Of a DNA stretch of 64,000 nucleotides, positions 15,042 through 55,020 are shown one piece after another. The stretch comes from Trichoplax adhaerens (Eukaryota; Animalia; Placozoa). The notes beneath the pieces are model-generated. The model was not told where the DNA came from, made no database searches, and worked only from the letters and a program-made list of their open reading frames with translations. Location: assembly GCF_000150275.1 (NCBI RefSeq), contig NW_002060946.1, positions 96,678-160,677 on the forward strand. The letters are read 5' to 3'. Numbering within the stretch: position 1 is the stretch's first letter; the number at the start of each line of letters is the position of its first letter. A program made the translations under genes and the position numbers.

Positions 15042-17146
15042 ATGTTACAGTCTTTATCCACTGCAAATATAGTTTTTGCTTCCATTAACTTAATAGTACT
15101 AACGTTTGGTGTAAGTGGAAACGCTATCCTCATAGGTTACTACCTTTTACGACGAAAGAAGCTACACGTTATCGATATTGAAATACTAAATTTGGTTTTC
15201 TCTGACTTGGGCTACCTTATTTTCAGGTAATAATTAGAGTACATTATATATCGATTTAACATTCGAGCACGCTCAGCTAATTACTTCATGGCTTGATTTC
15301 GTTATTAAATTGCAATTAGTCAACTATTTTCTGGAAAATATGTTATCTTAGTACAATAAAGAGTAAACTAGAAATAAGAGTATCCTACTCTCATATCAGC
15401 CATAATTTATCCTTACTTGGAATAGAATAGTCGGTTATATAGTTGCTTCAGAGTAATTTCAAAGTGTACGCGGAAATATAATAGTCTTTATTGCCCCTCG
15501 GTCTATAGACAATTAATGCCCCTAATTTTAGTTTGATTTTATTTATATACCTATTTCGAATCATAAATGATCAGGTAACCATTAAACACTGTTATAATCA
15601 TCCTAGCAAATGACCAAATTACGATCCATACAGTTTATAAACCAATGGCATCATAGCATAACGTACTATTCGGTCTAGAAGAATTTTCTATCATTTACTA
15701 TAAAAACTTTTAATTATCAGAATATCATAACCGTATATACTGAACAAGTATATTGGTAACTATTAACTGCTGCTATCGATCACATTATTGACTTAATATC
15801 TCCAACAAAAATTTTTTATAACAGTTCTTGCAAGCATACCCTGAATAATGTAGATAATATACTTTATTTTCAACCAAATTAGCCTTATGTGGGTCATTAT
15901 ACTTTATAGGTCATTCCAAATTCATTCTTTAATAGCCTGAATTTTATTACTTTAGATGAATAAATGGAACATGATAACAATACAGTTAATTCCTTCGCGC
16001 TAGATTTTTATTCTTAAAGCATAAGATTTCCTTACAGTCATTGTGAAATTTTACAATTTGAAATAAAAGGCTTATGTATAAAATTAAAATTAATTATCAA
16101 ACCTTATTTTTACAATCACTGATAACATTTTATTTATCAAATTACTGTAGTAAATCAGTATACAGTATGCTAATAACACAGCGAAAGCTTTCTTTACAAT
16201 TTCATTAATGCTATTTTTAAACATACCTAAGTATTTAAATATGGAATAACCTTAACAGGATATCTTCAATTAATTAAATTAAATCTTTTTCTAAACTAAT
16301 AGCTGTATGTACTCTATATTGGGATACTTTTCGAGCGGCCGTCCAATTTTCACTGAATCTTCATCAGGCTGCCGTTACTTCTTTCTGCCGATTGCTATCT
16401 TCAGTCAAACAACATCACTGCTTATGGTCTTAATTGCGCTGACACGTTATGCAAAAATCGTCCATCCTAACTCTTTCCATTCTTTCTTTACCAAGAAGAA
16501 TATCATTGTGATGATGACGTGCATATGGTGTCTTGGAATGATTATGCCTTCGCTTTCAGTCCATGGTAAATGGGGCAATATGGCTTACTTCAATTCAACT
16601 GGACTATGCGCAATTACTTATCAACCTCATCAATCTTTGGCTAATTTATCATTTTTAATTACTACTATATTATGTAATTATTACTTGCCGTTTTTGACTA
16701 TATGCTTTTGCTACGTCAGTATTAGCAAAGCAAATAGTCAAAGTCAGCGTAATATACTTAGTCATAGTCAACCCTCACGCTTAGGTAGTATTTCCAGTAT
16801 AAGCCATTTGCTACGCAAAGCAGACACTTTGCAATTAAATACATCGATATCGATTATTTGCATTATTTATTTACTCTCATATGCGCCTTACTTTATCTGT
16901 CATTCTATCCAGTTAGCTGGATGGATAACTATTAATTCATATCAAAAAAATTTTTTATTCGTTATTATGAGTATTAACAGCTTTAGTAATCCTGTGATAT
17001 TCACAATTATAAAATGTAGAGGTAAAAAACAGCAAAACATTAAATCCAGCACTTTACACAGTTTTAAAACTACTATCACATCGGATAATGCAAAAACTTC
17101 TATCGATATTCGATCAACAACGATGGCTAATACACCAATTGCATAA
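15042..17146 (+). CDS. Class A (rhodopsin-like) orphan GPCR, 2 exons, ~342 aa
   Basis: Exon 1 15042-15226 (TM1 GVSGN, TM2 ILNLVFSD; phase-2 donor AG|GTAA); exon 2 16303-17146 (TM3 ending IALTRY, ECL2 Cys TGLC, TM5 YYLPF, TM6 SYAPY, TM7 NSFSNPVIF). Joined length 1029 nt, in frame. Confidence 0.9.
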
Positions 17147-22457: not shown

Positions 22458-25400
22458 TTATGTAGCATTAATCTTTACAGCTTCTTTGCACGGAATAACC
22501 CTATGGTTCCTGCCAAGTCTTGGAAATTGTCTTTTCTTGCTGACCATCTTACGTTTATAATATGTACTAGCAAATATTAGAGGATTGCTGAAACTATTTA
22601 TGCTAATAAGGAGGACGGAAAAATTTTTAACCAGCGAATCGGTAACTTGTGTAGCACCAGCTAATTCCATAATATGGTAAATAGCAAATGGAGCATAGGA
22701 GATTAAGTAAACAATGCAAATGGCGGTAATAGAAGCATTTAGATAGCGGGTATCTGTTCTTCTTGTCATAAGGTTAGATTGAGGATTTAAACTATTGCTA
22801 CTTGATAACTGACAATGTTGTAAGAGACTGCGTTGACTTAGAGAATAGGCTCTGCTAATTCTAATGTAGCAGTAGGACATGATAACAAATGGCAAGTAGT
22901 AACATACCCCAATGGATAAGGCCAGAAAGGAAATGTGAAGCGGATGCTGGCCTGCTCTGTAACTTACGACACAAAGGCCCGTTGAATTATAGTACATCAT
23001 TTGACCCCATGAATTGGTCACAGTAAAAGCCGGAATTGTACATCCCATACACCATATAAGAGTAATCATGATCAAGATCCTTCTTCTGGTACAATATACA
23101 CGGTAAGTATTTTGATGGACAATACTAATATATCTTGTTATTGCAATAAAAACCATGAGAAATGATGTAGTGCGTCCAAAAATTGAAATAGGTAAAAAGA
23201 AAATTCGACACCCTAATGTATTTGTCGGGAATATCCTTCTGCCGTTTGAGAGTATTCCAAGGATGGACAAAGTACAACTATATGAATATATAAAATCAAA
23301 TTTTTTCCGTTATTAAGTGCATGATTAAGTAAAATGCGTATTTAAAATCCTTAGGTTTTAATAAATGTAGAGTAATTTTACAATCATTCCGTTCACTAGT
23401 TGACACATCATCATTTTATTATAAATAGGTATCTGTAAAGTATGATACAGACAGAATTTCAAAATCTGATTGATCGTAAGTGCAAAGAAGCCTCATTACT
23501 GGGCTTTACACAAGTAGATGATTTCAAAACTACTTTTAGTCTATTCACAACATTGTAATGGTATTTTTAATTTACTGTTAGCTAAGTTTGATATATTCCA
23601 GTGTCCTAATGTAGGACACTAAATCAATTAATCATATGCTGTACGTAGCTTAGCATTTACAATAAAATAATTAATAGATTTAAACAGAAAGATAGATTTT
23701 TAACGTCGATGATTTAACTAGATTTAAGTAATATGCATTTACTAAATATTTAATAATTCAACTCTAACATCTGAATTAATATTTTTTAATTAGTCAAGTT
23801 TGATTTAGATTGCATGAGTAAGTATCATAGCTTGGCACTACAACAATAGAGTCAATTAATGCAAACATAAAGACGGATTTCAATAGACCCATAGCTACGG
23901 TGGTAAATTACTAATTATTTAAATTAATACCCAAACTGCTGCTATTCATGACAATTGCAGCCAGTGCCCTTAAAAGTTGACCCGAGAGATCCTGGAGAGC
24001 TTATTAAGCATAATAATGAATTAACTATATGCTACAATTAAACTATTTCTAGTGCTATTTTTTTTTGTAAACAAAATATGTGGATGATCAATACACGGTC
24101 AATTATGCTGCACGTAAATATAGATCATTTCATCTGAACTACGTCTGGATCAATTAAACGGTTGAGAGGAATATTACCGTTATGTCAAACTACGAGTATT
24201 TTTCATTGCAATATTTCCAACCGATTTAATTTGTTGCTAGTGGATTAAATTTTAGCATGTTTATTGATCATATAATTGGACCTTATTTATTGGATTTTTT
24301 CAAGAAGTGCAGTATGCCACTAATGATAAATTTAAAATGAACAATAAAAAGTCTAATTTAAATTATCATAACTAACTCTTTTCAAGATCAGTATTGACAA
24401 TACAAAGTCAGATCAATTTTGAGCCTTATTCCAAGTATCACTTCTCCAATCTCGAGTATTATCCAGAGCAAAATTCTCACTACCAATATTAGGTCTTGAA
24501 AATTTAATGAATAAAAGAAATTAATTAATCTATTTTTTCCTTCATGGCATTTTCCTTTGCACACACTTAATTGGAAAATATGCTCAGTGCAGAAATTAAC
24601 AGCTCTAATATGTATTGATAGCTTATTTTTACTTGCAAAGTTGAATTAATTTAAATTTACTATCGATACCTTCGCAGACTATGCATTAGATACTAACACA
24701 TCATGAGTACAACAAACGGTAATAATGGCCAGTTTTCCGTTCCTTTCATCCTTGTAAGCTAGCAGGTGTTTACTGAAGCCAGGCATAATAATTATTGGAA
24801 TCCTTCTAACCATATAAGGAATGGGCCTACGAGTATATTACCAGACATTGAACTCTTCTTTTCAAAGTCTACAATTTGTATTCCTTTTCACTTAAAGTAT
24901 TATTATGCGCCATTGCAAGCTATCTCGTAAATACTTTATAGTAATTTTACCATCTACATGATTTGAAATGATTATGGTAATCGATTATAACATTAGCTGT
25001 TAACGAAGAAACAGTCCCGTTGAAATTGTATGCAGGTTTTTATTTTTGCCATCTGATAAGTTACCGTATATATTATCTACAGTATAAACTATACGAAATA
25101 GAGTTATTGCTACGATTTCTTACCTATGAAAGACTACTTTTACAGTATCCAGTAGTCTGAATAAACCTCATTTTAAAAGTTGTAGTTACACACTATTAAA
25201 GCGGTCAGCTTTTAATTGCGAGAATCGAGGTGAAAACTGTCTCCTTGAATGGACACCAATCAATTATAAATAGTAGACTTCAATAAACCAATTTTTGTCT
25301 ATAACAATTTTACAGTGCAGAAATATTACCGTAGCCGAGAGCTTTGTTCTTCATTTGTATTATTCTTGCGGATCACCTTGACATGGTGATCAACAGAATT

Positions 25401-30996: not shown

Positions 30997-32432
30997 TGTT
31001 TTCTAGTGATAATTGAAGCGTTTTTTTTGGGTCAATGTCATGATCGCATGTCACGTCGAATACTATAGTTGTCAAAGAGAAGTATAAAATTGATATTTGA
31101 TAATTTTATTTCAGCGTGCAGCTGTAATATGGTTTCTATTTTGTCATCTATTCTGTTTTGTTTACAACAGCTACAATGGACATTACGAAGAGCCTATTTA
31201 TTTTAGTGAGTTTGGGAGGTTCCCTTTCTGGTGTATTGTACTAGGTCAATAAATCAATCCATTTTTTAGACAGTACGTAAGTGAAAGAATTTGCAATAGT
31301 GCATGGAATGCACAACTGCCTTGCAATGTAGAGGCATTAACGTTCTATTCTGGAATTCTGCATTCATACACAAATCATTGCTCTCTTGCAGTAAACTGCA
31401 TCACAAGTGTTCATCTTTTCTATTTGTTTAGCATTCTTCAAGTGCTCAATTTTATCGACGGTTGTGGTTGGTAAATATGGCAGGAAAATTCATCGTGTAA
31501 TCATTTTAAATCATGAAGTATTTTCAGTCTAGGTAGAGTATAATAATTTCAGCTGATTACACGAGTGATCGACGTTAGGAATGCGTTGTAAATCTGTGCG
31601 TCTTCAATAAAGGAAGTATTGATTGTGGCTAGCGGGATGGAAAGGCTCACTTGTACTTATACACTGTACAGTGCTACATATGTGTTCTCTCTGGCTGGTT
31701 TTTGCTGTCTATTCACAGCTCTCAGCATATTTGTGATTGCTGTTTCTCTGATCTGTAACTGTCATATTGCAGCTGTCTGATTGTTATTTATTTAAGTTTC
31801 TATCATCATAAACAACTCATTTTTTTGGACGTACTTTGAAGTCTTCGTGCTAACTGTCTGCATAGCCTGTAGTCTTATCGTATAGCATTTTATGAAAGTC
31901 AAGCGGCACTGTCAAGCCCATACGACTGTACTTCAATAATAGAGAATCTAATTTAATGCATGGCAGAACGTAGGCTTCTACCTGCACAGTATGTCGCGAA
32001 ATTGAATTTTACGAAGATGTTGAAACAGAGTCATTAATGCAAATTTGTAATCCATAGGATGGCATCATTCGCTATCGAGTAACAACCTTCCAAGCTGTAT
32101 GTGAAGAACTATTTGAGCTTAAAGCCGCTCGGTTGGAAGCGAGCGTCGACAGTCCTTCACTGAAAATAGCGCCTGCAAGTAAGGTGCAGCTGCAATAACA
32201 CAATAATACGCGTACTCTATCTCTCTTCATAGACGAGTACGTATATTATTATAATTATGGTGTAGTTGCACTTTGAGTAGCGCAAGGTAGTCGGGTTGGA
32301 GGTCCATCAGTAGTCCTCCAGGAACGACTAAATCCTCGTCCACATCTGCAACTGATTCTAACCATGTTCTAACCGTCTACATTGCTTACACCATCGACAT
32401 TTTTCTCTCACTTCCATCATTTGGACCTGTTG

Positions 32433-32511
32433 GACTAGTTGGGACCATTGAACGCTACGTCCCGTACTATTAGACTAGTTGGGACTAGTGAACGTCACCT
32501 CCCGTGCTACT
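32433..32511 (+). repeat. Two imperfect ~40-bp tandem copies
   Basis: gactagttgggaccattgaacgctacgtcccgtact followed by gactagttgggactagtgaacgtcacctcccgtgct. Confidence 0.7.
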
Positions 32512-32612
32512 GTCCTCAGAGTCGTTGGTTTCAGAGACGAAATCATAATAAGTACAGTACTTAGTACAGTACTATACAGTGTATTGTACGCTGGTCACGA
32601 CTGCCCTGTCGA

Positions 32613-33160
32613 GACATGCGCGATGGAGCATGAATGTGTGACAGATAGACAGGCGGTCGTACGAGAGCGACTGCTGGTCGATTCCACTGTACTTTTGACT
32701 ATTGACTACTTTCATACTCGACGTCGCGGTATGGTTTGAAACCGTTTATTACGTGCCCTTGAATGAACCAGAGCGGGACATGCGCAATGGAGCATGAATG
32801 TGCGACAGACAGACAGGCAGCCGTACGACAGCGACTGCTGGTCGACTCCACTGTACAGTGTACAGTGTACAGTACCGTAGGGCACACTATACTTTTGACT
32901 ATTGACTACTTTCATACTCGACGTCGCGGTATGGTTTGAAACCGTTCATTACGTGCCCTTGAATGAACCAGAGCGGGACATGCGCAATGGAGCATGAATG
33001 TGCGACAGACAGACAGGCAGCCGTACGACAGCGACTGCTGGTCGACTCCACTGTACAGTGTACAGTACCGTAGGGCACACTATACTTTTGAATATTGACT
33101 ACTTTAGTACTCGACGTCGCGGTATGGTTTGAAAGCGTTTTATTACGTGCCCTTGAATGG
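32613..33160 (+). repeat. ~200-bp tandem repeat, ~2.8 copies, upstream of DPP8/9
   Basis: Units start ttttgactattgactactttcatactcgacg at 32693 and 32893 (variant at 33086); unit lengths 200 and 193 (one TGTACAG heptamer fewer); partial diverged copies at both ends. Confidence 0.95.
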
Positions 33161-33487
33161 ACCGGATCGGACCGGAGAGTCAGTACTGTCTGCACTATGC
33201 TGTGCTCGAGGTAACTTACTCGTTGAGTAACTTTCGAAAGCCTTCGCCAGCCGATTGCGTCGCTTGGAAACTACAATCTGATTGATCTCCAAGTTGGTAA
33301 AATCTCCATCGTATCTTAAGTTGATCCTGATTTTCTTCAGTTGTACTCGCGTAGATCAATTTTATTGCCATCGAAGGCAAATAGACGCAAATCACAAATC
33401 TCCAAGACTGCGTAACAGTGTATGATTGTAGTGTTGCACGCCATTGCTACAATTCAGAAGAATTGAGAGAGCGATCGATCATTGCTA

Positions 33488-39549
<6,062 letters not shown>

Positions 39550-41911
39550 TGCCGGAGAATTTCGACTAATTTGATTTCCGCAAGATTTCTCGTGCAATTA
39601 TTGCATAAGATGATATCAAACTATCCTGAAAAAGTGCACGTTATGGTGATCCATGTTTAATGGTAAGCTGTTTACGAGCTTTCGTGATCACTCTTAAGTA
39701 ACTAAGAAAAAATTTATTTTGAATGTTAGATGAGTCTAGTTTGTGAATTTAAAGTCATAAGTTAGTTTAAGTCGAGCCAAATTTATGGCAATAAATCAAG
39801 TATGCATATGGAGCATGTCATATCAAACAATTTAACTACAGTACAATGATAAATATTTTAACTGAACTTTAGATCTTTTACTATCCTGTAAGAATTTTAT
39901 CCTCTAAGCTGTTTTTACTTGTTATAAGGCGTTATTTCAAACGTTGTAGATAGAGCTATAATTTCATGTTAATGTTTATCACCTTAATGGAATGGTATCT
40001 ATTGTACAGTGTACAATCTACGATAATTGGACACGTTACCAGGTATTCATTAGTCTATATATACAATTAAAAATTGTTCTCAATTGTAGTAATAAGAATT
40101 CGTTTTACAGTTTCAATGATTCCTTTTAGACGAGAAGTTACAATATTTTATTTAGAGTTAAATAGTCTCTGTTTTATTGTTATTTCTTAAACTCTAAAAC
40201 TGCATCGATAGTATCTTTAAGTCCAATTAGAATGAATTTAGAGTATTTATATGCAATTCTATCTTTGCAAATACATTTAGCGCGATTACATCCGTGATTG
40301 CGTTCGCGTGAACTATTTTTATCACTGCAAGCGTTTCATTGAAATAAACATTTTATAAAATTGTTTGGTGATGAACTATATCTGGAAATTGATATCAAAG
40401 ATGCATATTTAGCTTGTTACGAGTTGTTGAAACTGATATATTCTGCTCTATCACTACTAAAATACGCCTAACGATATTGAGGCAAGCATATTTAACTAAA
40501 ATTGGACTCACGCTGATATCATGAAAGGAACTTTCGATCAAAATTGCAAGTGTAGTTGTATTTACAGTTAAAATAAGCAAGATGTCATAGTTTTTGTCCA
40601 TGATCTATGAGATACCAAACTTCGATTAAATTTTGGCATATGTACGCGATTCTGTACAAATATGTAGACTTTTCACAGCTTGTAAGCAATTTAAGGCACG
40701 ATATTGAGCCTATTGACTGACATGAGCCCAGTTCTGCATAAATCTTACTGTATTACTAACTAATCTCGCATACTGATGAAAGTGTGCATTGCCAATAATC
40801 AATTTATTTTGTATATTTTCGTTATATGACCGTATACCTGATTGATTCAGTTTTTATTCTTTCATTACGTTGACGGAAAATTAAAACATTACGATTAGAC
40901 AGATAAAAGTTCACTAAATAATATGAATAAGTGTACTATTTACCTTGGCACAATGGTGTACAAATTATATTATAGTCTATAAACTACGTATGTATGATAT
41001 GAATATTAAATCGTTCCGCATACATTATGCATTAAAATGCAAATTGACTATAGGATATTAGTTATAAGAAATCTTACATCCGTAAACACTATCGCACTAA
41101 TTAGGAAACTATCTAGAATATCATGGCATACGTTGTATAATTTGTAAATCGCTCACCTGCTGTAAATGCGGTTTAAAACAACTGCGAAATTTACTTAATT
41201 TAAACTGAGGGAAAAATTGTAAAAATAATTCCAATCTTTCCTGGATGACCTAATGTGCAGATTACCTAGTGGTACGTAAAATTATAGAGGAAGACTACAG
41301 GTACTTCGCGAAGGCAACTAGTGTAAAGGCTCAGAAAGATTCGGGATAGAAACTAGGAATAGCAGTAGTGCGCTCTTAAAACTCAAGTTAAACTATGACA
41401 AGATCATAAAATCTGTTTCGTGATAGTTTCAAGTTTGCTCTGTCCAATCCTTATCTAAATTGCGTCGCTAATCATAATTTTTATTGTATAAATATCTAGA
41501 TAGAAATTAAAGATCAAGAAAGCGATAAACTTGATATCAAGGCATTCGCATTCTATTTCTACTGTTGTAGTTCAGACTTCTGTTATAGTAATTGCTATAG
41601 AAGGAATTATACCAAAGTGTATCAACATCAAGTTCTGATACAGTATAGTATACTGTACTTATGATAGTCTATGAATTAATAGATGTTTTATTCATGAGTT
41701 AGACCGAAAAATAAACAAATTATAGCCCATGTATATTAATGCAAAGTGGTATCCAAGGTTCAGGCACTAAAGGTCAATCTAAAGAACGAAGCTTTTGAAT
41801 ATCTCTAATGCATGTAAATTACTCGTATTTTAGCTGTTGCAACTTTAAGTAGCATATAACTGTGCAAAAGAAGACCAATTTCACAAATTCATTTATCTAA
41901 GTTGAATCCAA

Positions 41912-44900
41912 ATGGATACCTTTCAGGATGTCGTAGGCTCTATACAACATAGAATCCACGCATTCAATCATCAAATTTCCCAAATATATCAAAAGATTGA
42001 TCATCTACGCCAAATTAATAATCCAGTTATCGAAAACTTGTTCAGTATTGATCAAGAATACCTTCATGGCCACTCGAAGTGTAATGACGTTCAAATCATC
42101 ATCACAGGTAAAATGTTTAAAAATATATTGATATTTTTACTTCAATTTCATAGCAATGATGATAGCGTAAATAAATAATCTATAGGCAAATTTAATATTG
42201 ATAATTGCATATGGTGGGGTATTTCAGAAGGAAATTAGAGACGAGCAATAGGCCAGTATTATGTGGTCAAAAATAATACCTCAATATTCTTCATGTTAAA
42301 CTCTGGTTTTGCCTTACTTAGGTACTCCTGGCGTGGGTAAAAGTAGCTACATCAATCAATTAATCGACTATCCTTTACTTCCAACAAATTTTTCTTTATC
42401 CAATTCTTGCATATGGAAAATTTATTACAGTCAAGAGCCAAGAGTTATAATTCAAAATTATCCTGTGAACGCTGACAAGGGCGACAACAGTAATTGCCTG
42501 TCTCAAGTAGTTCAGATAGAGATCAATGATTACCAAGAACTGCAAGCTATCTATAAAAGCTCAATTTTCACTAAGAAAAGTGACTTCAATTGCTACAAGA
42601 TAATAACTCTATATTGGCCGCTAGCAGCTTTAAAGGTACCTCATATTCTATAACACGGCATGTTTATATACCACCTCTTATATTTGAAAGAAATCTCTTC
42701 GGTGAGAATGTCACAATACGCCAAGATTGTCAGTAGTAAAGTACTATACCACTAGGTTTGCATAGATTAACAAGTCCATAGATAATTATTGAAAAAATGA
42801 TATAATAACTTGATATAAGACTAATTTGTATCGCTATGTCCTAAACAGAAATAGAACCCTTAAACCAATATAATAATTTATTTTACTACTATTAGTGAAT
42901 CAATGGAAATTTTATATTTGCTATGCAAGACTTTGCTTGAGACCTTAGAATAGTTCAATGCTATGCATTAGTACTAAGTGATCATAACTCTATCATCGAG
43001 CATTTTGCATAAAGAAGTATTGATTCTCGTACTCTAAAGCTAGTAGCTACTAGCGCAAATAATTATATTTACAAAATTAAACAATACCAAACTTTATATA
43101 TGAGCAGAAAATCTATGCAGGGCAATGCTGTATCGATGCCCATATTTGTGATTAGCTCTTTCATATAGAAGTATTATTATATTCTTATTTCATCTACCAG
43201 CACTGTAATATTTTAACGCGGAAATAGTAACACCCACACAGAGCTACATAGAGTAACTCTATATTCATATACGCGTACAATTCATATTATATATGTACAG
43301 TTGAATGGTAAGTCCTATTTTTGCATGCTGTTTTATACTCCTAACATACAATATAGCGCGGATATATTTCACTAGTAGCTGACACTAACTGCTTCTCAAA
43401 TAAATTACTTCAATTTGCATTAGTAACGTCGAAATATGATATTAATTATAATTATCTACTAGGAGAACATATCTGTCATTGAAATAACTTCATCTTTATG
43501 GCATCTGCTAGCTGATAAAATATCTTCTGTCATATCATCGTCTTATCTGGCTCTCATCTATATATTAGATGCTACGCTTCTGATTGATCAAACAATAAAA
43601 CAGGTAATATAATGTCAGCCAAATTTATTCCCTCATTTTTATGTTAAAAGACCTGGAAAAATCCAATCATAATATAATGTAGATAAATTTCTCAATTTAC
43701 ATCGTTATCTACTATGCCTTATAAGATTTAAATATGTGCTCCTTACCTATTTACTGTATTTATCGTTATTAGAATGTTACTCGCTATTTCCAACCTTGTA
43801 TTTATGAACTCTTTATTTTGTAGTAGAATTTATAGTTAGGCCAGCTAGCCTTAATAAAATTAATATCCCTACCTAAGTTTATTTTCTCTAAATAGATCAA
43901 TGATTTTAGAGACAGTATTCAGCAACTCAATAATGGTATTAAAAGTCATCACATCATGAAATCAATGCTATTCGCGTGCAATAAGATGGATTTAATTAAC
44001 GCTGATCGTAATCCAATGTCATTATCAACATATGCTACTTTACACGATTTCCTATCTAAAAGCTGGATTGGCTCTCGAAAGCAGCGCTGCTACAATTGCA
44101 TCTCCATCACCACTACAGATATTGCCATGGCCGCGTTCTGTAAAAGCAGCATACAAGAAAGACTACTCCATATTAATGATATTTTTAACTATCAGATTAG
44201 CCGTGAGAATAACGTAAAAATAAGGTTGATTAAAACTTAAATTAACCTATTTAGTATGCATAGCGCTATCTACAAATGCATTGGTTATATTGTAATTAGT
44301 TATAGAATACTCGTATACAGCAGCTTATAAGTAGATCGTGATCTTAGAATATAGATCTCGGTAAAAATCATCTTTAAGACAGTTAAAATACGCTTCCATT
44401 TTGTTCTCAATTAGCTCTACGCTTACGATATGAATTCTTAAATTAAACGTCTATTTTTCGTTTCTATTAGAAATCTGAAAGAATATATAAATAGCTTAAG
44501 TCAAAACATTCAGTTTTTGCAAGAAATGGTCAATTTGAAGATGAATCATGATCCAACTTACGAGATAAATTCAGAAAATTTTCGACTTCGACTTTGCGAA
44601 TTAGAAAGCAAATTGAAAAAGCCTACTAGGAAGCTCTTAAATGAACTAATGTCAAGCAGTAACCAAATTCAGCGCATGGAAATGATTATTTTGGATTATT
44701 GTCGGAAAGATCAAGTTCATGCCGATTTATTCCATTGGCAAGAATGTGATTTCCATGATTTCTGTTGGTTTCAAGATATGTACTCCTATGCTCAAAATAA
44801 AGTAGCGACAAAATTATTAAAAAAAATTAATGAAAGCGAAAATATTGACCAACTTCTGATGCAATGGAGGCATGATGTTTTGGATGATATACGACTTTAT

Positions 44901-47752
44901 TTTAATCCATTCTCTGCAGTAAAAGATCAATACAAGCAACAGCAAGATGATCATCAAAATTTATCAGAATGGATGAAAGATCAAATACATCACTGGAAAG
45001 ACGAGCTGCCTACATTGTTCCAAGCAATGACTATTCCAGCCATGCTATCTTTTGATTGTGGTTATTTGGGATTAGCAACAGTGACTGTTTATTTCATCTA
45101 TAATGCTTATAATATCAAGCCAAGACTAATGCAAGTTTTACAAGCAACAAGTCATAAAATGTTTCATGACTTAGTTTCATCACCAATTATACATCTAGTA
45201 CGCAGAGAACAGGATAAACTATTACAACAACAATTAGATAGTCATTTAATATCGCATATTGAGGCTACTTTAAAAGCCTATGAACAAATCTATCGTGATA
45301 TCAGCGATGATGACATGAGTCACTCTATAATTTCGTCATTTAAATCTATTCTGCCTCAAATTCAATTAATTCATCAAAATCTTAAAGTGCTGGATATTCT
45401 TTATATTGAAAAATTTGAATTTTCATCTCTCGATGTCATGGATTATCAAACCTTTCCGGATCATTTTGTGCGTGATTCAGACCCACGACTGCTTAAATGC
45501 CGCATTCAACACCAACACTATCGACAACTTGATGTGCATTTGCGCCATTATAACTATCAAATCGAGGAGTCTAATGTTGATGAAATTCTGACACTTAGCC
45601 AATCGTTAAGGTAACTTAATTTATTAACCATTAGTCTCTTCATAGGCTTCGTCATGCAGATTCAATTCTAATTTAACACATCAGCGATTTCTAAGCAATT
45701 TATTGATTTCGGCACTAATCATCGGATAGGTTATCAAATTATTAATTCAATACACGATGATCGGTATTGATATATAATTCCATCACTGCTTAACCATTCA
45801 TTCCAAATTTCCGTCGGTTTTTACTTTTAACTTTGCTTGTTATTCTTTTAAACGGGAATAGTAGTAAATCAATGCTAATCAATCTCATGATAGACAAGCC
45901 CACAGAATAAATACAGAAATTTACTTGCATGCTATAATGTCAATATCTTGTAAAGCAATCCGTTTAAATTCTTCACTATGAATGCCAAGGATAGTGAATG
46001 ATACATTGAACTTTTAAAATTAATTATGAAACTATTACAAGTTTAGTACCTTTAATTATATACATAGGAGTGGAATTTCTACCTCTAAGAGTGATGCCAA
46101 TAGTATAACTCTGACTATAATGTAGGTAGCCATAGAGATCAGAACAGTTCTCCGCTAGTACAGTATTTGCTATTCAGTATGATCAAAGTCTGAACCACAA
46201 TTCCTAGTCGGCGTTTTCATAAAGATCATGAAATCTTTAACATGATGTGAAGAATAACCGAAATACAAGCAAAAGTATTTATTACCGTACTATATGTAAT
46301 CGTTAGCCCAAATTGGTAGATATTATTTTATCCATATATTCATGGTGGCTGTATATTTTATTATGTTCTATTATAGAAAGTGCCATCACGTTGAAGACAT
46401 ATAGTTAGAACTGCATCTTGTCTTTGTCTAGAAATCGTAACTAGTGCAATTATTTAGTTAAATATTAAGAATTTAAAACATTTAACGCCTAAATTAACCT
46501 TTTTTACCGTGTCGAGAAAATATAACTTGCCATCAACGGTCCATAATCTGCATACAATTCAATTAACCCTAAATTCCAAAATTGAATCTAAGTATTTACC
46601 GAATATACTCTTTTCTCGGTGATATAGTAGTACTTGTGTCAACCTATTTACTCCTGTACAAAATAGTCGGATTGTTTCTCGGTCGTAAGTAAATTCTAAA
46701 TTATGTCTAAATGCATACTACTAACAAAATAGGAAAATGGATCATCAAAACGTAGGAAAATTACAAGGAATTCTCAAACATATCCATCTAACTCATTGTC
46801 ACCTTTACTTTACTTATCCAAGCACGGCATGTACATTAAGAGAATTTTTAAATGGATCATCTGATTGCATTCCAGCTCATTATTCTTCCGATTTTACTAA
46901 ACAACTATCAGCTTATCAATCCATGTTATCCTTAGCTACCGATATCTGCCAAGGCTTAGCATATATTCATGAACGAGGATTCATACATTGTCATTTAACA
47001 TTAGACTATGTTCTGGTAAGATGAGGAAATTACAGTGTATTTGATATTTGTTGTGAAATGTACCAATCAGTTTTATACAGATATCGATGTTGCTTACCTG
47101 CAACTAAGAATGCCATAGTATATTAGTCTTGTAGCCTGTTAATATTATCTCTTATTAAATGATTTACTTTTAGAACTAGTAACTTAAGTATAAAGTCATA
47201 TAATCTCATTTAGCTATATAAATGCTTCTATCTTTAATTTTTCTAATGTTACAAAACCAATTACAAGAACTTTATCAAAGTTTTAAAATCGATTTTACTT
47301 TTTTTAATGCAATCTAGCTAACGTCGACATGCACAGCAGTCATTTGCGATATTGGCTCACCAAAAGTAGAGAACTGGATCTTTGATATCGAAACATTATC
47401 ACATTATCAACTAAAATTAATGCAGTATATGGCTCCTGAAATTCTGCACAGGCAGATTCACAATGGCCGATCAGACATTTATTCCTTTGGTCTATTACTA
47501 TGGGAAATGTGGTATGGCCTAAGCATAGATTGCCATATTGAAAATCAATCACAAACCAGTAGAAGTAATATCATTGAAATGATTCTTCAGCAACCACCTC
47601 CATCTTTAGATATAACTCCAATCCCCGAAGAAACGTTCAGGATCTTTGTTGCTCAGTGCCTATATGCTCAACCTGAACTGAGACCAAGTATACAAGTTTG
47701 TCAGCAAATTTTGTACGAACTACGTCGTCGTGCCTGTACTTCTGATTCTTAA
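41912..47752 (+). CDS. DSTYK-like protein: dynamin-like G domain + helical region + degenerate protein kinase domain, 7 exons, ~945 aa
   Basis: Exons 41912-42107, 42322-42635, 43463-43603, 43896-44224, 44471-45610, 46733-47015, 47318-47752 (2838 nt, all GT-AG, in frame). P-loop ITGTPGVGKSSYINQL..LLP, G4 FACNKMD; kinase landmarks LRKMDHQNV, DICQGLAYIHERGFIH, ICDIG, YMAPE, SDIYSFGLLLWEM, CL...PELRP. Confidence 0.85.
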
Positions 47753-50700
47753 AATAAATAACATGCACAATTGGATAGATAACTATGAAATACCATGATT
47801 ACTTTTCTCCAGAGCTAATAATATATAATTAAATCATTGCGCAATCTATCGTACTTCATCTATTTTAACGTAATACTTCAACATAGTTTGTAATTGCAAT
47901 ATCTGTAATTATTTTGATAGGTTTTAAATTATGATAAGAAATCTTAAGTCACTTTCTATTTACTGCATTCCTTCTTGTACATAATTTTATATTAACTTCA
48001 ATGATATTTCACCAGCTCATCTAAATCAAAACACAGCATACAGTATAGCGAAACCTGCTTTATATCGCATCAACATACAGCAAGAAATCATAATTAAATA
48101 ATTGACCATATTCATATCTGACTATAATCTAAGAAACATTGCCGCTAAAATTCTGAGAAATTGCTGTAAATCAATGTCTTAACTGGAAATTCTTTATTAA
48201 TACACAATAGTTGATTTCTTAATATAAAGTTATCGCTCATTACTAAATAGCCAAATACAACTTAAAAATAAATGCTAAAACACTTTCAGACTGATAAACA
48301 ATAAACTTTAAAATTAATAATTAGATACGACTTTTCCGTCGATATCAATCAGCTTGACGAGTAAAAATTAGACATAGTTCACTAGAATGGTTCTATAGAG
48401 GCTGCGGCAATTAAACCTGCTGCATACAGTCTCTAATAGGATACCATTACAAGAGCTACAGAGATCAGTATGTAAGATTAATGTGCTGTTTTCATGCATT
48501 AACACAATATAATGTATTATACTACCACTGTATTATCAACACTATTGCTAGATTTTCATTCAATACCATAACCAATCCAGTCGTACAGTATATATGATTA
48601 TAATTCTGATGCAACACTTTTTATACATTTATACTGTAACTACAAGCATTTCTAACCTGAAGTCCCTAATATTAGAATAGGTGAATTATTAACTAGAATT
48701 ATAGTTAATGCGCTATTCTTCAGTTTATTAGCAAATAAGTAACTTTTAATTATCAATTTCCTGAATGGCCTAAATTTATAATGGTAACGAAATAACAAAG
48801 TCCATAGTAACCCAATCTTTCTCATGTAATTTCACAGAACTTTGTCATGATGATTAGAACAATTACAGAATACTTTATCATTTGGCGAACACATGGCTAG
48901 GCGTATGAGCAACGCTAACAAAATAATAGCATCCTACAGTAACATATATATATATATATACGAGTAATATATATTTTGAAAGCTATCTGTTTGTCAATTG
49001 CATAATCAGCACTATCAATTTATAGCTTTTGCTATTCATATGTGCGCATTTCTACCATACTGAAGCGCATATATTGTTATGCATCGAAATGAAATGTGCT
49101 CATATCTATTACTGTGCATTTCATTAATTTCTTCGTCAACGCTATTCAGCAATATAGTATCGTTTATCACTCATTTACGAGTATACTGAAGATTCGACTG
49201 CTGATTCGTAGATATCTTTAACATCCGCTATACACGAACGACGATATGTGAGCACTGTATATGTTAGATTTTACACATTCTGATGTGTTTATTAATCTGT
49301 CTTTAATGTTTTTTAGGAAGCCATCTGTCTGCCAGATTCACAGTTCCAAAAAGTCATCAACTGTTGCATGCTACTCTTTTCGCCCAATGCTATAAGACAT
49401 GCAACATATCCTTGTGTATATAGAAGTCAGCTGCAAGATTTACAAATGCTTGCTACAAAATATTTCCATAGCTACTTCATCAATATTATTTCATAGTGGT
49501 GTTAATCCATATATTTGCACGTAGTTCTACATATACACATTGTAAGACGTTGTACTGTGTTCCAAAAAGTATTCAAAAATTTATTCGGAAAAGCTCTTAC
49601 AATAACTATTAAGTTAATAAATCGAATCAGGCTGCTCAAATCTAATTACGGTTAAAGCTGGTTTATAATAATTAAAACAATTTCGTTGGCATTAGTCAAT
49701 TATAATGTGTCCACGCAAAATGTACGTCATTAATTACGGTAATTATTTATCTACTGTCTTTTATTTATAATAAGTAATTCGTTCTGAGTAACAGTTATGA
49801 CGAAAAGGTAGAAATATAAAATAAATAAAATTTTAGGACTACGATGCCTTTTTTCAATATTGATTCATTATTATATAGGCGAAAGCCATCGTAAGATTAC
49901 TCGTTTAAAGCAAATCAAACCAACTACAATAAATAATTTCATAAGCATCTGGCCTTAATCCTCTATAATTAATTAGTTAAATTTGATCAGCTACAATTCA
50001 TAAATTGAAAAATCCTGACTACATCGAGACTAATTTAGTAAAAAGTTATTGGTTAACTTTTTGATAATATAATAAATAAATAGTAAACAATCTTCATTAA
50101 TTACGATAGCGCAGCACATATGGTACATCCATTCTTAAATTTAGTAAATAGCTATAGAATTAACGGCCTGACGTAGTTTCAGATGTTGAGGGATTTCATT
50201 CTTTTGTTGGATACCAAATCATTACTTGTATCGCTAAGTAGCCGTAAGCGAAAATTGATTTATTGACTAATCTCCCATTTACCTATTCATTAAGTCGTAA
50301 AGGATATCATTCAAAAGCTTTTACCTTAATAATACCAATACGGGCCTACCATGTATCAGTGCATATAATATATACAGGATAACGCGAAAATTTGGCGATA
50401 TATTTGTGTGGAAGTCCTGTTTGTATGGCTAAGATCAAATATTTTTGCATTACAATTTTAAATAAATTTATGAATCTAGTAATTGTAGCATGATAATTTG
50501 AAAAAAGCCGAAATAAGTAACCCTGTTTATACAAATTAATTACTTAGATAAATGCTATTAAATTTTAAAGTAAGATGTTCGTATTACTGAAATATTTGTT
50601 AGAATTATTAACAAATGTTTCATAAACTCAGAAAGAGACAACCCTTTCAGCATTACAAGTATTCCAGTCTTTATTACAAATTTTGGATGATTTATAAAGT

Positions 50701-53994: not shown

Positions 53995-55020
53995 TCAAGA
54001 ATTTATTAGTATATTATTGACGTTACTAATCGGCGAAGAATAAATAAAGGGATGAATTGCCATATTCACTTTTTGAAGTAGAATAACAGAAATAGAAACA
54101 TATTTCAACGAAGCTACTGTCTGATTAATTTCCATTGGTTGTAATAAAATTGCTAGAGATAAAGGTAACCAAGTTGTTGCATCAGTGATTGCAATTGCGA
54201 TGGCAAAAAATATCAGCCACGGTCTAATTTCATTTCTGACTAATATCGCATCGTTGCGACTGTGATGTTGTCGTGACGGAATTGATTGTTGACACCAGCC
54301 AAGTGTAAATATTATATGAGCATAGATAATAATAACTAAGCAGTAGGAGATAAAGCAATAGGCCAAGTAACATGTTGCTGAATAAAATAAGATCTCAGGT
54401 GAAGTATTCAAATAAATACATAAACCATTGACATCATAAGTATCATCGAATGGTATTCTTGTTAAGGTACGGGATAAAATTGTAACAATGCTGGCAGTTA
54501 TAATGGCTATCATCCATATGATAGATGTGATTACTAGTATCGTGATGCGATAGTCTTGCCAACTCAAGGCACGATAGTGTAAAATTAATTTCGATCTCTC
54601 AATAGCTATTAGAACTGCAAATGATGATGATGCAATCGTAGAAACACAGTTAAGAAATCGTAAGACAGCACAAAATGAACTATTTGGCCATTGATAGTAC
54701 TGTGATCTATCATTTGATGGATACGATTGACGATCCAAGTAAACGTCAACGGCAGCAATAGCAGTCATATAAAATGTACCGATTAAATCAGCAAAAGCAA
54801 GATGTGCTAGTAAATATGACGGTGTAGCATGTAATCGATTACCATTATTGTGATGTATAGAAGATACACGTTGCACAGTATTGGTATTCTTACGGAATCG
54901 CTTACAGTGAACTATAATGGCAGCAATATTGGCTAAACTACCTAGAACGCCTGGTATCCAAGTCACAAATGGTGCGAAAACCCTATGTCCAGTAATTGCG
55001 GATGATCGATTCGAAGCCAT
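53995..55020 (-). CDS. Intronless class A GPCR with LGR/relaxin-receptor/GRL101-type 7TM core, no LRR ectodomain, 341 aa
   Basis: Single ORF with 7 hydrophobic segments; LAHLAFADLIGTFY..IAAVD, Y....W..S.FC..L.FL, IAIER, NGLC, TDATTWLP and HPFIY resemble the LGR-family transmembrane signature. Confidence 0.85.
   Translation of the reverse strand: MASNRSSAITGHRVFAPFVTWIPGVLGSLANIAAIIVHCKRFRKNTNTVQRVSSIHHNNGNRLHATPSYLLAHLAFADLIGTFYMTAIAAVDVYLDRQSYPSNDRSQYYQWPNSSFCAVLRFLNCVSTIASSSFAVLIAIERSKLILHYRALSWQDYRITILVITSIIWMIAIITASIVTILSRTLTRIPFDDTYDVNGLCIYLNTSPEILFYSATCYLAYCFISYCLVIIIYAHIIFTLGWCQQSIPSRQHHSRNDAILVRNEIRPWLIFFAIAIAITDATTWLPLSLAILLQPMEINQTVASLKYVSISVILLQKVNMAIHPFIYSSPISNVNNILINS

Follow-up and report, generated by a model that had tools for sequence, protein, structure and literature searches.

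A transcribed and conserved fusion of a degenerate dynamin-like G domain and a pseudokinase in Trichoplax adhaerens, and its divergent paralogues

Bacterial dynamin-like proteins and mitofusins work through nucleotide-dependent dimers of their G domains and through stalk rearrangements on membranes. Key roles in membrane traffic, immunity and cell death are played by GTPase-kinase fusions, LRRK2 among them, and by pseudokinase switches, of which MLKL is an example. The kinase DSTYK has been reported to be active and to act on STING at late endosomes (PMC11933320), and it has been described as distinct from RIPK1-7 in a study in which conserved catalytic residues were counted (PMC9573974). In the present study, a gene at positions 41912-47752 of a 64,000-nucleotide stretch of the Trichoplax adhaerens genome (contig NW_002060946.1, positions 96,678 to 160,677 of the forward strand; the whole stretch is hereafter called the window) was analyzed. 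The gene is a transcribed, conserved and selected fusion of a degenerate dynamin-like G domain, a helical middle region and a pseudokinase. It is one of a family of about nine genes that fuse a dynamin-like domain to a kinase and that lie in two tandem clusters of the genome, with paralogues A, B and C on the same contig (C1411) and further members on contig C1412. No example of a dynamin-type pseudo-GTPase and a pseudokinase in one chain was found in the literature searched, and neither a fusion of a dynamin-type GTPase with a kinase-like domain nor a placozoan family of this kind is described there. An initial annotation, made from the letters of the window, had called the product a double pseudoenzyme and had taken DSTYK-type proteins to combine a dynamin-like region with a kinase; this premise appears in none of the searched papers that name DSTYK together with dynamin, GTPase or N-terminal.

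The intact frame of seven exons and about 945 codons, with canonical splice sites and no stops, that had been described initially was confirmed from the sequence. Transcript evidence was taken from contigs of public runs placed on 41850-47800, and all searches, alignments and folds were made exon by exon, single junction-spanning codons being read across only for the classing of single-nucleotide polymorphisms (SNPs). The features of the gene are as follows.

41912-47752, plus strand: the gene, read from the sequence; 7 exons, 2838 nt, equal to 945 codons and a stop (TAA)
41777..41911, plus strand: 5' untranslated region, minimum extent, from a contig of run X7 that reaches 73 nt upstream of 41850
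41912..42107, plus strand: exon 1, with the start codon, the N-terminal helical region and the first base of the Gly66 codon, where the P-loop opens
42322..42635, plus strand: exon 2, with the P-loop GTPGVGKS, the switch-I region with Asn93, and the family motif YWP..LK at its end
43463..43603, plus strand: exon 3, with the G3-equivalent strand VIEITSS instead of DxxG
43896..44224, plus strand: exon 4, with the G4 motif NKMD and the end of the G domain
44471..45610, plus strand: exon 5, with the helical stalk or middle region and the kinase N-lobe, which lacks the Gly loop and carries Arg685
45030..45110, plus strand: hydrophobic segment within exon 5 (codons 514-540), candidate membrane-inserting paddle
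46733..47015, plus strand: exon 6, from kinase alphaC to the catalytic loop, with HCH and Tyr799
47318..47752, plus strand: exon 7, with DIG, APE, the C-lobe and the stop codon
47753..48088, plus strand: 3' untranslated region, minimum extent, from a contig of run X5 that continues 288 nt past 47800

All six introns begin with GT and end with AG, given that exon 4 ends at 44224 rather than at an earlier GT at 44214, and introns 1 to 6 measure 214, 827, 292, 246, 1122 and 302 nt. An in-frame TGA is found at 41903-41905, 9 nt (three codons) upstream of the ATG. The G+C content of the window is about 31%, so that long open frames would seldom arise by chance, and exon 5 by itself holds 379 open codons. 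Introns 1, 2, 3, 5 and 6 are precisely skipped in contigs of runs X5, X7 and X11, which belong to three studies; the junctions 42107/42322 (exons 1/2) and 47015/47318 (exons 6/7) are each present in contigs of both X5 and X7. In X5, one contig joins exons 1-2-3-4 and a second joins exons 5-6-7. For the junction of exons 4 and 5, the second X5 contig opens with nine letters, GTAAAAATA, before 44469, which are unlike positions 44460-44468; together with the two following bases, they equal the final 11 bases of exon 4 (44214-44224), a sequence that is unique within the gene. The spliced contigs of the three runs and this 11-base match place the G-domain exons and the kinase exons in one mRNA. Thus, an intact, spliced and expressed single gene has been established, with five junctions observed directly in three studies and the sixth obtained through the 11-base match, and the separate genes that the initial annotation had considered as an alternative are not what the transcripts reveal. 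The X1 contigs contain the whole stretch unspliced and behave like DNA.

Several features of the two domains and of the region between them carry the interpretation. First, the G domain retains the P-loop (G1) GTPGVGKS, codons 66-73, at 42107/42322-42344, where it is interrupted by intron 1, and the G4 motif NKMD at 43980-43991, whereas G2 and G3 are lost. At the position of the switch-I threonine of G2 stands Asn93; paralogue A and the C1412 genes have a Thr there, which itself aligns with Thr103 of Nostoc BDLP. The DxxG of G3 is replaced by EITS at 43481-43492, where the paralogues read IIDTPG (paralogue A) or VVDSPG, so that Asp is substituted by Glu177 and Gly by Ser180. The G2 threonine and the Asp and Gly of G3 sense the gamma-phosphate and Mg and couple them to the switches and to hydrolysis. 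A profile of six G1 exons, the one of the window gene included, matched only bacterial dynamin-like proteins in the PDB, with Nostoc BDLP (2j68) at E 6e-4, followed by Campylobacter 5owv and SynDLP 9em9. Consistent with this result, paralogue A reaches 39 bits (passing the cut-off) and 25 bits against Dynamin_N on two exons, and its best solved relatives are the Campylobacter dynamin-like protein 5owv (E 0.007) and mitofusin-1. A profile of the G4 exon gave nothing meaningful against the PDB, and the own exons of the window gene gave no match to PADLOC or NCBIfam. Judged from its motifs and from these matches, the G domain is of the bacterial-dynamin/mitofusin type and appears to be half disabled. 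The initial description of a dynamin-superfamily G domain with G1 and G4 and without the DxxG of G3 is therefore correct; the relationship to dynamins stands, but the classical dynamin, Mx or GBP type does not, the PDB and LeoBC matches indicating the bacterial-dynamin/mitofusin type instead.

Second, the C-terminal domain is recognizably a kinase fold. Exon 6 scores 26.5 bits against Pfam PK_Tyr_Ser-Thr (cut-off 23.1) and exon 7 scores 41.9 bits against Pkinase (cut-off 31.7). The Gly-rich loop (GxGxxG) is absent, the position of the beta3 Lys is Arg685 (45543-45545), HRD has become HCH at 46986-46994 (with His794 at the position of Asp), and the catalytic-loop Asn has become Tyr799. DFG reads DIG at 47348-47356, with its Asp retained, and both APE (codons 840-842) and the SDIYSFG..WEMWYG helix are intact. 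Among solved kinases, the C-lobe in exon 7 comes nearest to IRAK4, NEK7 and PKR, and that of paralogue B to MAP3K12, TAK1 and RIPK2, suggesting that the kinase is TKL-like. On these residues, the window kinase is probably a catalytically dead, TKL-like pseudokinase. The earlier statement that its catalytic residues are lacking holds for Lys, the HRD Asp and Asn, but not for the DFG Asp.

Third, the region between the two domains may be a dynamin-like stalk. The hydrophobic segment at codons 514-540 contains the top Kyte-Doolittle window of exon 5 (1.42), lies within the best conserved exon 5 block of three orthologues, and lines up collinearly with the hydrophobic segment SP(I/V)WV that the paralogues carry; the value of 1.42 fits a paddle that inserts into the membrane better than it fits a transmembrane helix. 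The middle region of the window gene matches that of paralogue A in BLASTP (4e-7, collinear), paralogue A matches the C1412 member L019 (1e-3) at the SP(I/V)WV hydrophobic motif, and the middle region of L019 matches the stalk part of PADLOC LeoBC (positions 325-590 of 601) with E 5e-6.

Two contigs from other samples, L017 (a metagenome) and L018 (a Logan assembly), carry orthologous exons with identical exon ends, and we infer that they represent other placozoan lineages. The identity in exon 5 is 54-55% between the window gene and the orthologues (P0001, P0003) and 79% between L017 and L018, and in exon 6 it is 77% between the window gene and its orthologue. In L018, G3 reads IIEIPPS, G4 reads NKVD and the catalytic loop reads HRHLTLDH; thus the same losses in G3 and HRD are found together with a kept G4, indicating that the motif pattern is old and stable. 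The ratio of non-synonymous to synonymous substitution rates (dN/dS, Nei-Gojobori) comes to 0.09 in exon 6 and 0.25 in exon 3; in exons 4 and 5, dS reaches saturation in the comparison with the window gene, and for exon 5 the pair L017 and L018 gives 0.13. The exon of the catalytic loop, exon 6, is the most constrained part examined. Among the runs, 17 exonic differences were observed; of these, 9 are synonymous and 8, all outside the kinase exons, are non-synonymous (roughly 0.27 as a per-site ratio). In the DNA-like run X1, the exons differ at 6 of 2838 nt vs 13 of 3003 nt for the introns, about half the density. These values, at about 0.1-0.25 for dN/dS, are far from the ratio near 1 that the initial annotation had named as evidence against function, and by them the gene is under purifying selection.

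The paralogues were obtained from an assembly of 105.6 Mb in 1414 contigs. Searches of the genome with exons 2 and 7 gave relatives; exon 5 has no second copy there. The members compare as follows.

C1411:210300-233000 (loci L013-L016), 70-90 kb downstream on the same contig: paralogues A, B and C, with C on the opposite strand, head to tail
Paralogue A (C1411, about 210-217 kb): G domain intact, with G1 GESGAGKS, the G2 Thr and G3 DTPG; kinase dead, with Asn for the beta3 Lys, YKN for HRD and EFG for DFG
Paralogue B: G domain without the GK[ST] P-loop; kinase with GxGxxG, Lys, Glu and HRDLKLDN kept, the sole change being DFG Asp to Glu
Paralogue C: G domain with GDDCQGKK and no DxxG; kinase with Lys, Glu, HPD, Asn and Asp (DPS) kept and no Gly loop
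C1412:8208000-8288100 (loci L019-L028): about ten dynamin-like genes in tandem, their strands alternating
C1412, plus-strand genes 8214k, 8225k, 8259k and 8283k: G domain intact, with GETSAGKS, DSPG and NKWD; kinases dead, with HAH or HGH for HRD and HLM or HAT for DFG (exon found in three of the four), APE kept
C1412, minus-strand genes, at least five (8208k, 8237k, 8246k, 8268k and 8275k): G domain intact
Window gene: G1 and G4 kept, G2 and G3 lost; kinase Lys, HRD Asp and Asn lost, DFG Asp and APE kept

The two minus-strand genes of C1412 that were read through lack a kinase domain and contain a strongly hydrophobic stretch of transmembrane type. Although the identity between paralogues in the middle region is only 12-16%, their gene structure is shared: the intron in the P-loop lies at the identical place in paralogue A, and apparently in paralogue B too; the G1 exon of the family terminates in (Y/E/H)WP..LK, and the middle exon in ..LR or ..IIR ahead of the kinase alphaC exon. 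The common intron place and exon ends support a common descent of the family. Across its members, the pattern is reciprocal, in that either the GTPase motifs or most of the kinase catalytic residues are kept, and the window gene is the only member seen with motifs lost in both domains, in agreement with the label of double pseudoenzyme. The initial annotation had also foreseen active DSTYK-like paralogues. Paralogues do exist, but they are not simply of that description: five of the eight other fusions combine an intact GTPase with a dead kinase, and paralogues B and C combine a degenerate GTPase with a nearly complete set of kinase residues.

Two further observations concern the C1412 cluster. 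The alternating strands of its genes suggest partner pairs, comparable to the bacterial DLP1/DLP2 pair. Also, the member at L021:3189-3992 (C1412:8214188-8214991) carries about 160 extra residues, acidic and rich in Ser, in its G1 exon, inserted between the switch-I region and the WP..LK motif.

Herein, we propose that the product of the window gene is a nucleotide-binding, non-hydrolyzing, membrane-associated scaffold or regulator, a proposal that, as far as the sequence can tell, is fairly likely. A non-catalytic, membrane-associated regulatory role, as put forward in the initial annotation, is the most reasonable reading. In this proposal, the protein would be held on an endomembrane through its hydrophobic paddle and would bind guanine nucleotide through G1 and G4 without hydrolysis. 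Because the G2 Thr and the Asp and Gly of G3 are missing, it would stay in one fixed conformational state instead of cycling. The G domain, the stalk and the pseudokinase would serve as interaction surfaces, by which the catalytically competent paralogues, both those with an intact GTPase and a dead kinase and those with a degenerate GTPase and a competent kinase, might be regulated, capped or scaffolded. In other words, a non-hydrolyzing member could pair with, cap or hold the active paralogues. By analogy with KSR, MLKL and RNase L, the pseudokinase is probably a docking or allosteric module. The expansion in tandem clusters and the fast divergence, which call to mind the immunity-related GTPase families, point, speculatively, to cell-autonomous defence or to the handling of symbiont or organelle membranes as the process involved.

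Several results weigh against this proposal. The match of exon 2 to Dynamin_N (positions 10-80, E 8e-5) reaches 23.1 bits, under the 27-bit cut-off for a fragment, a score that refers to the exon 2 fragment of a G domain spread over four exons; of the two Pfam families expected initially, Pkinase was obtained over its cut-off in the exon-by-exon run and Dynamin_N was not. Exon 2 alone found no match in the PDB. The Kyte-Doolittle value of the hydrophobic segment is under the usual transmembrane threshold, and an AlphaFold2 model of exon 5 from a nine-sequence alignment, which shows helices and then two strands, has a predicted local distance difference test (pLDDT) score of 44.7 and is unusable. 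A direct hhalign comparison of the middle region of the window gene with that of the C1412 members was not significant, so that the homology of its stalk depends on the chain through paralogue A. Orthologue exons 1, 2 and 7 were not recovered, and the cluster members and other contigs gave nothing longer. Nucleotide binding, membrane association and partners are predictions only. Finally, residual activities might be retained. Since Ser92 and Ser94 stand beside the lost G2 Thr, and Glu177 takes the place of the G3 Asp, residual GTPase activity is conceivable; with its DFG Asp surviving, the pseudokinase might bind a nucleotide or a metal, or be capable of atypical catalysis.

Among the alternative explanations, the one that survives best is that the family is the placozoan branch of DSTYK, with the window gene as a degenerate DSTYK paralogue that works in the DSTYK pathway on endolysosomal membranes. 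This explanation is possible, but we give it less than an even chance. The length of 945 amino acids and the C-terminal TKL-like kinase fit it, as does the location of DSTYK at late endosomes (PMC11933320). The searches for relatives speak against it. With exon 5 as the query and no length filter, 1.84 billion representative proteins gave only P0001, a placozoan-like exon fragment, and the unrelated protein P0002. Exon 5, exon 7 and a profile of six sequences, used in word-indexed searches that are blind to proteins of about 900 amino acids when the query has the size of an exon, gave only P0001 and P0003, or nothing; the ESM Atlas gave no usable match to exon 5 or to the middle region of paralogue B, and a scan of JGI metagenomes with the orthologue profile gave no relative. 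Thus, no relatives beyond the placozoan-like contigs were found in the protein, Atlas and metagenome searches, and a dynamin-like domain in DSTYK is not described in the literature searched. Human DSTYK presumably has, at a similar place in its N-terminal part, a degenerate P-loop-like segment followed by LPT, which would resemble paralogue C, with its GxDC..K version, and the window gene; we regard this as a lead and not as evidence.

A bolder reading is also conceivable. It supposes an undescribed placozoan family split into members with a live GTPase and a dead kinase, members with a dead GTPase and a live kinase, and a doubly degenerate member, which together form a hetero-oligomeric membrane switch, for example in defence or in dealing with symbionts. 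The same family would be the evolutionary source of animal DSTYK, whose N-terminal two thirds would be a decayed dynamin-like GTPase and stalk. This idea is offered tentatively, and we hold it doubtful.

Less probable still, and in our judgement unlikely, is that the product is a divergent yet active enzyme, hydrolyzing GTP by means of Ser92/Ser94 and Glu177, using an atypical kinase mechanism, or both. WNK-type and other non-canonical kinases do use atypical mechanisms; moreover, G1, G4, the DFG Asp and APE are intact, and the dN/dS of 0.09 in the exon of the catalytic loop indicates that this region matters. However, the kinase has lost its Gly loop and, out of five core residues, three (Lys, the HRD Asp and Asn), the G domain has lost the G3 Gly and the G2 Thr, the same losses are seen in the orthologue L018, and the paralogues that keep these motifs show what the intact version looks like. 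That the gene is a decaying or drifting duplicate, an incipient pseudogene or two genes wrongly joined is highly improbable despite its many lost motifs and the very divergent middle regions of its paralogues, given 945 open codons at 31% G+C with canonical splice sites, spliced contigs of three studies that link the G-domain and kinase exons, dN/dS of about 0.1-0.25 and a density of X1 SNPs in exons about half that of introns; a pseudogene is rejected on the open frame, the splicing and the dN/dS, and two separate genes on the presence of both sets of exons in one mRNA.

Some observations were also made in the surroundings of the gene. In intron 5, at 45636-46426, contigs of X7 are present with a joint 46202->46285 whose ends are CT..AC (equal to GT..AG on the minus strand), and this may be a spliced antisense transcript inside the intron. 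In the same intron, a 33-bp element at 45717-45749 is also contained in unrelated contigs of X1, X5 and X11, with loose ends on both sides, and looks like a short dispersed repeat. The gene is set among genes for G-protein-coupled receptors: open reading frames of single-exon size at 16307-17146 (plus strand), 22458-23270 (minus strand) and 53995-55020 (minus strand) match 7tm_1, the rhodopsin family, with E from 1e-11 to 1e-24. The local G+C rises to 0.445 at 32001-34051, and an open reading frame there (33482-34051) has a weak match, of 25.6 bits and slightly short of the cut-off, to the N-terminal domain of dipeptidyl peptidase 8/9.

What is new in the present study is a fusion family in two tandem clusters beside at least five relatives that are apparently kinase-less and membrane-anchored. 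The family forms a natural series in one genome, with the GTPase kept, the kinase kept or both degenerate, and thus the division of catalytic and regulatory roles between two nucleotide-binding modules becomes directly testable. If the link to DSTYK is true, the unannotated N-terminal part of a human disease gene would find its explanation, in structure and in evolution, through this family; if the link is untrue, the family would be a placozoan innovation.

In comparison with known systems, the window protein resembles DSTYK by description, that is, in its length (about 930-945 residues), its long non-kinase N-terminal part and its C-terminal TKL-like kinase. It differs in that DSTYK is reported active (PMC11933320) and the window protein lacks Lys, the HRD Asp and Asn, and the exon-based searches gave no sequence link between the two. 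The ROCO proteins (LRRK1/2) likewise hold a G domain and a kinase in one polypeptide, and this likeness suggests intramolecular cross-talk; however, the G domain of the window gene is of the Dynamin_N type and not the Ras-like Roc, and its kinase is dead. No Pfam match to COR, LRR or ankyrin domains was found in the exons of the window gene, and a ROCO protein is rejected since Pfam, run per exon, gave Dynamin_N and no Roc or COR. Another close likeness is to the bacterial dynamin-like, mitofusin and Fzo proteins, compared here through 2j68, 5owv (DLP1/2), 9em9, LeoBC of the Eleos defence system and mitofusin-1. These proteins and the family have in common the pattern LLG..LLP....T....Y after G1, the G3 motif D(T/S)PG and the G4 motif NKWD or NKMD; a long helical stalk with a hydrophobic membrane segment is a candidate further likeness. 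Unlike them, the window gene is without the G2 Thr and G3 and carries a C-terminal kinase-like domain that is absent from those proteins, and unlike the bacterial dynamin-like proteins it has introns and a host-like base composition. With MLKL, RNase L, KSR and the GMS-type IRG proteins, no sequence relationship exists beyond the superfamily; the likeness to them lies in a degenerate nucleotide-binding fold that is under selection and probably serves as a switch or docking module, and, for the GMS-type IRG proteins and pseudokinases, in regulatory members standing beside intact paralogues in expanded, clustered families.

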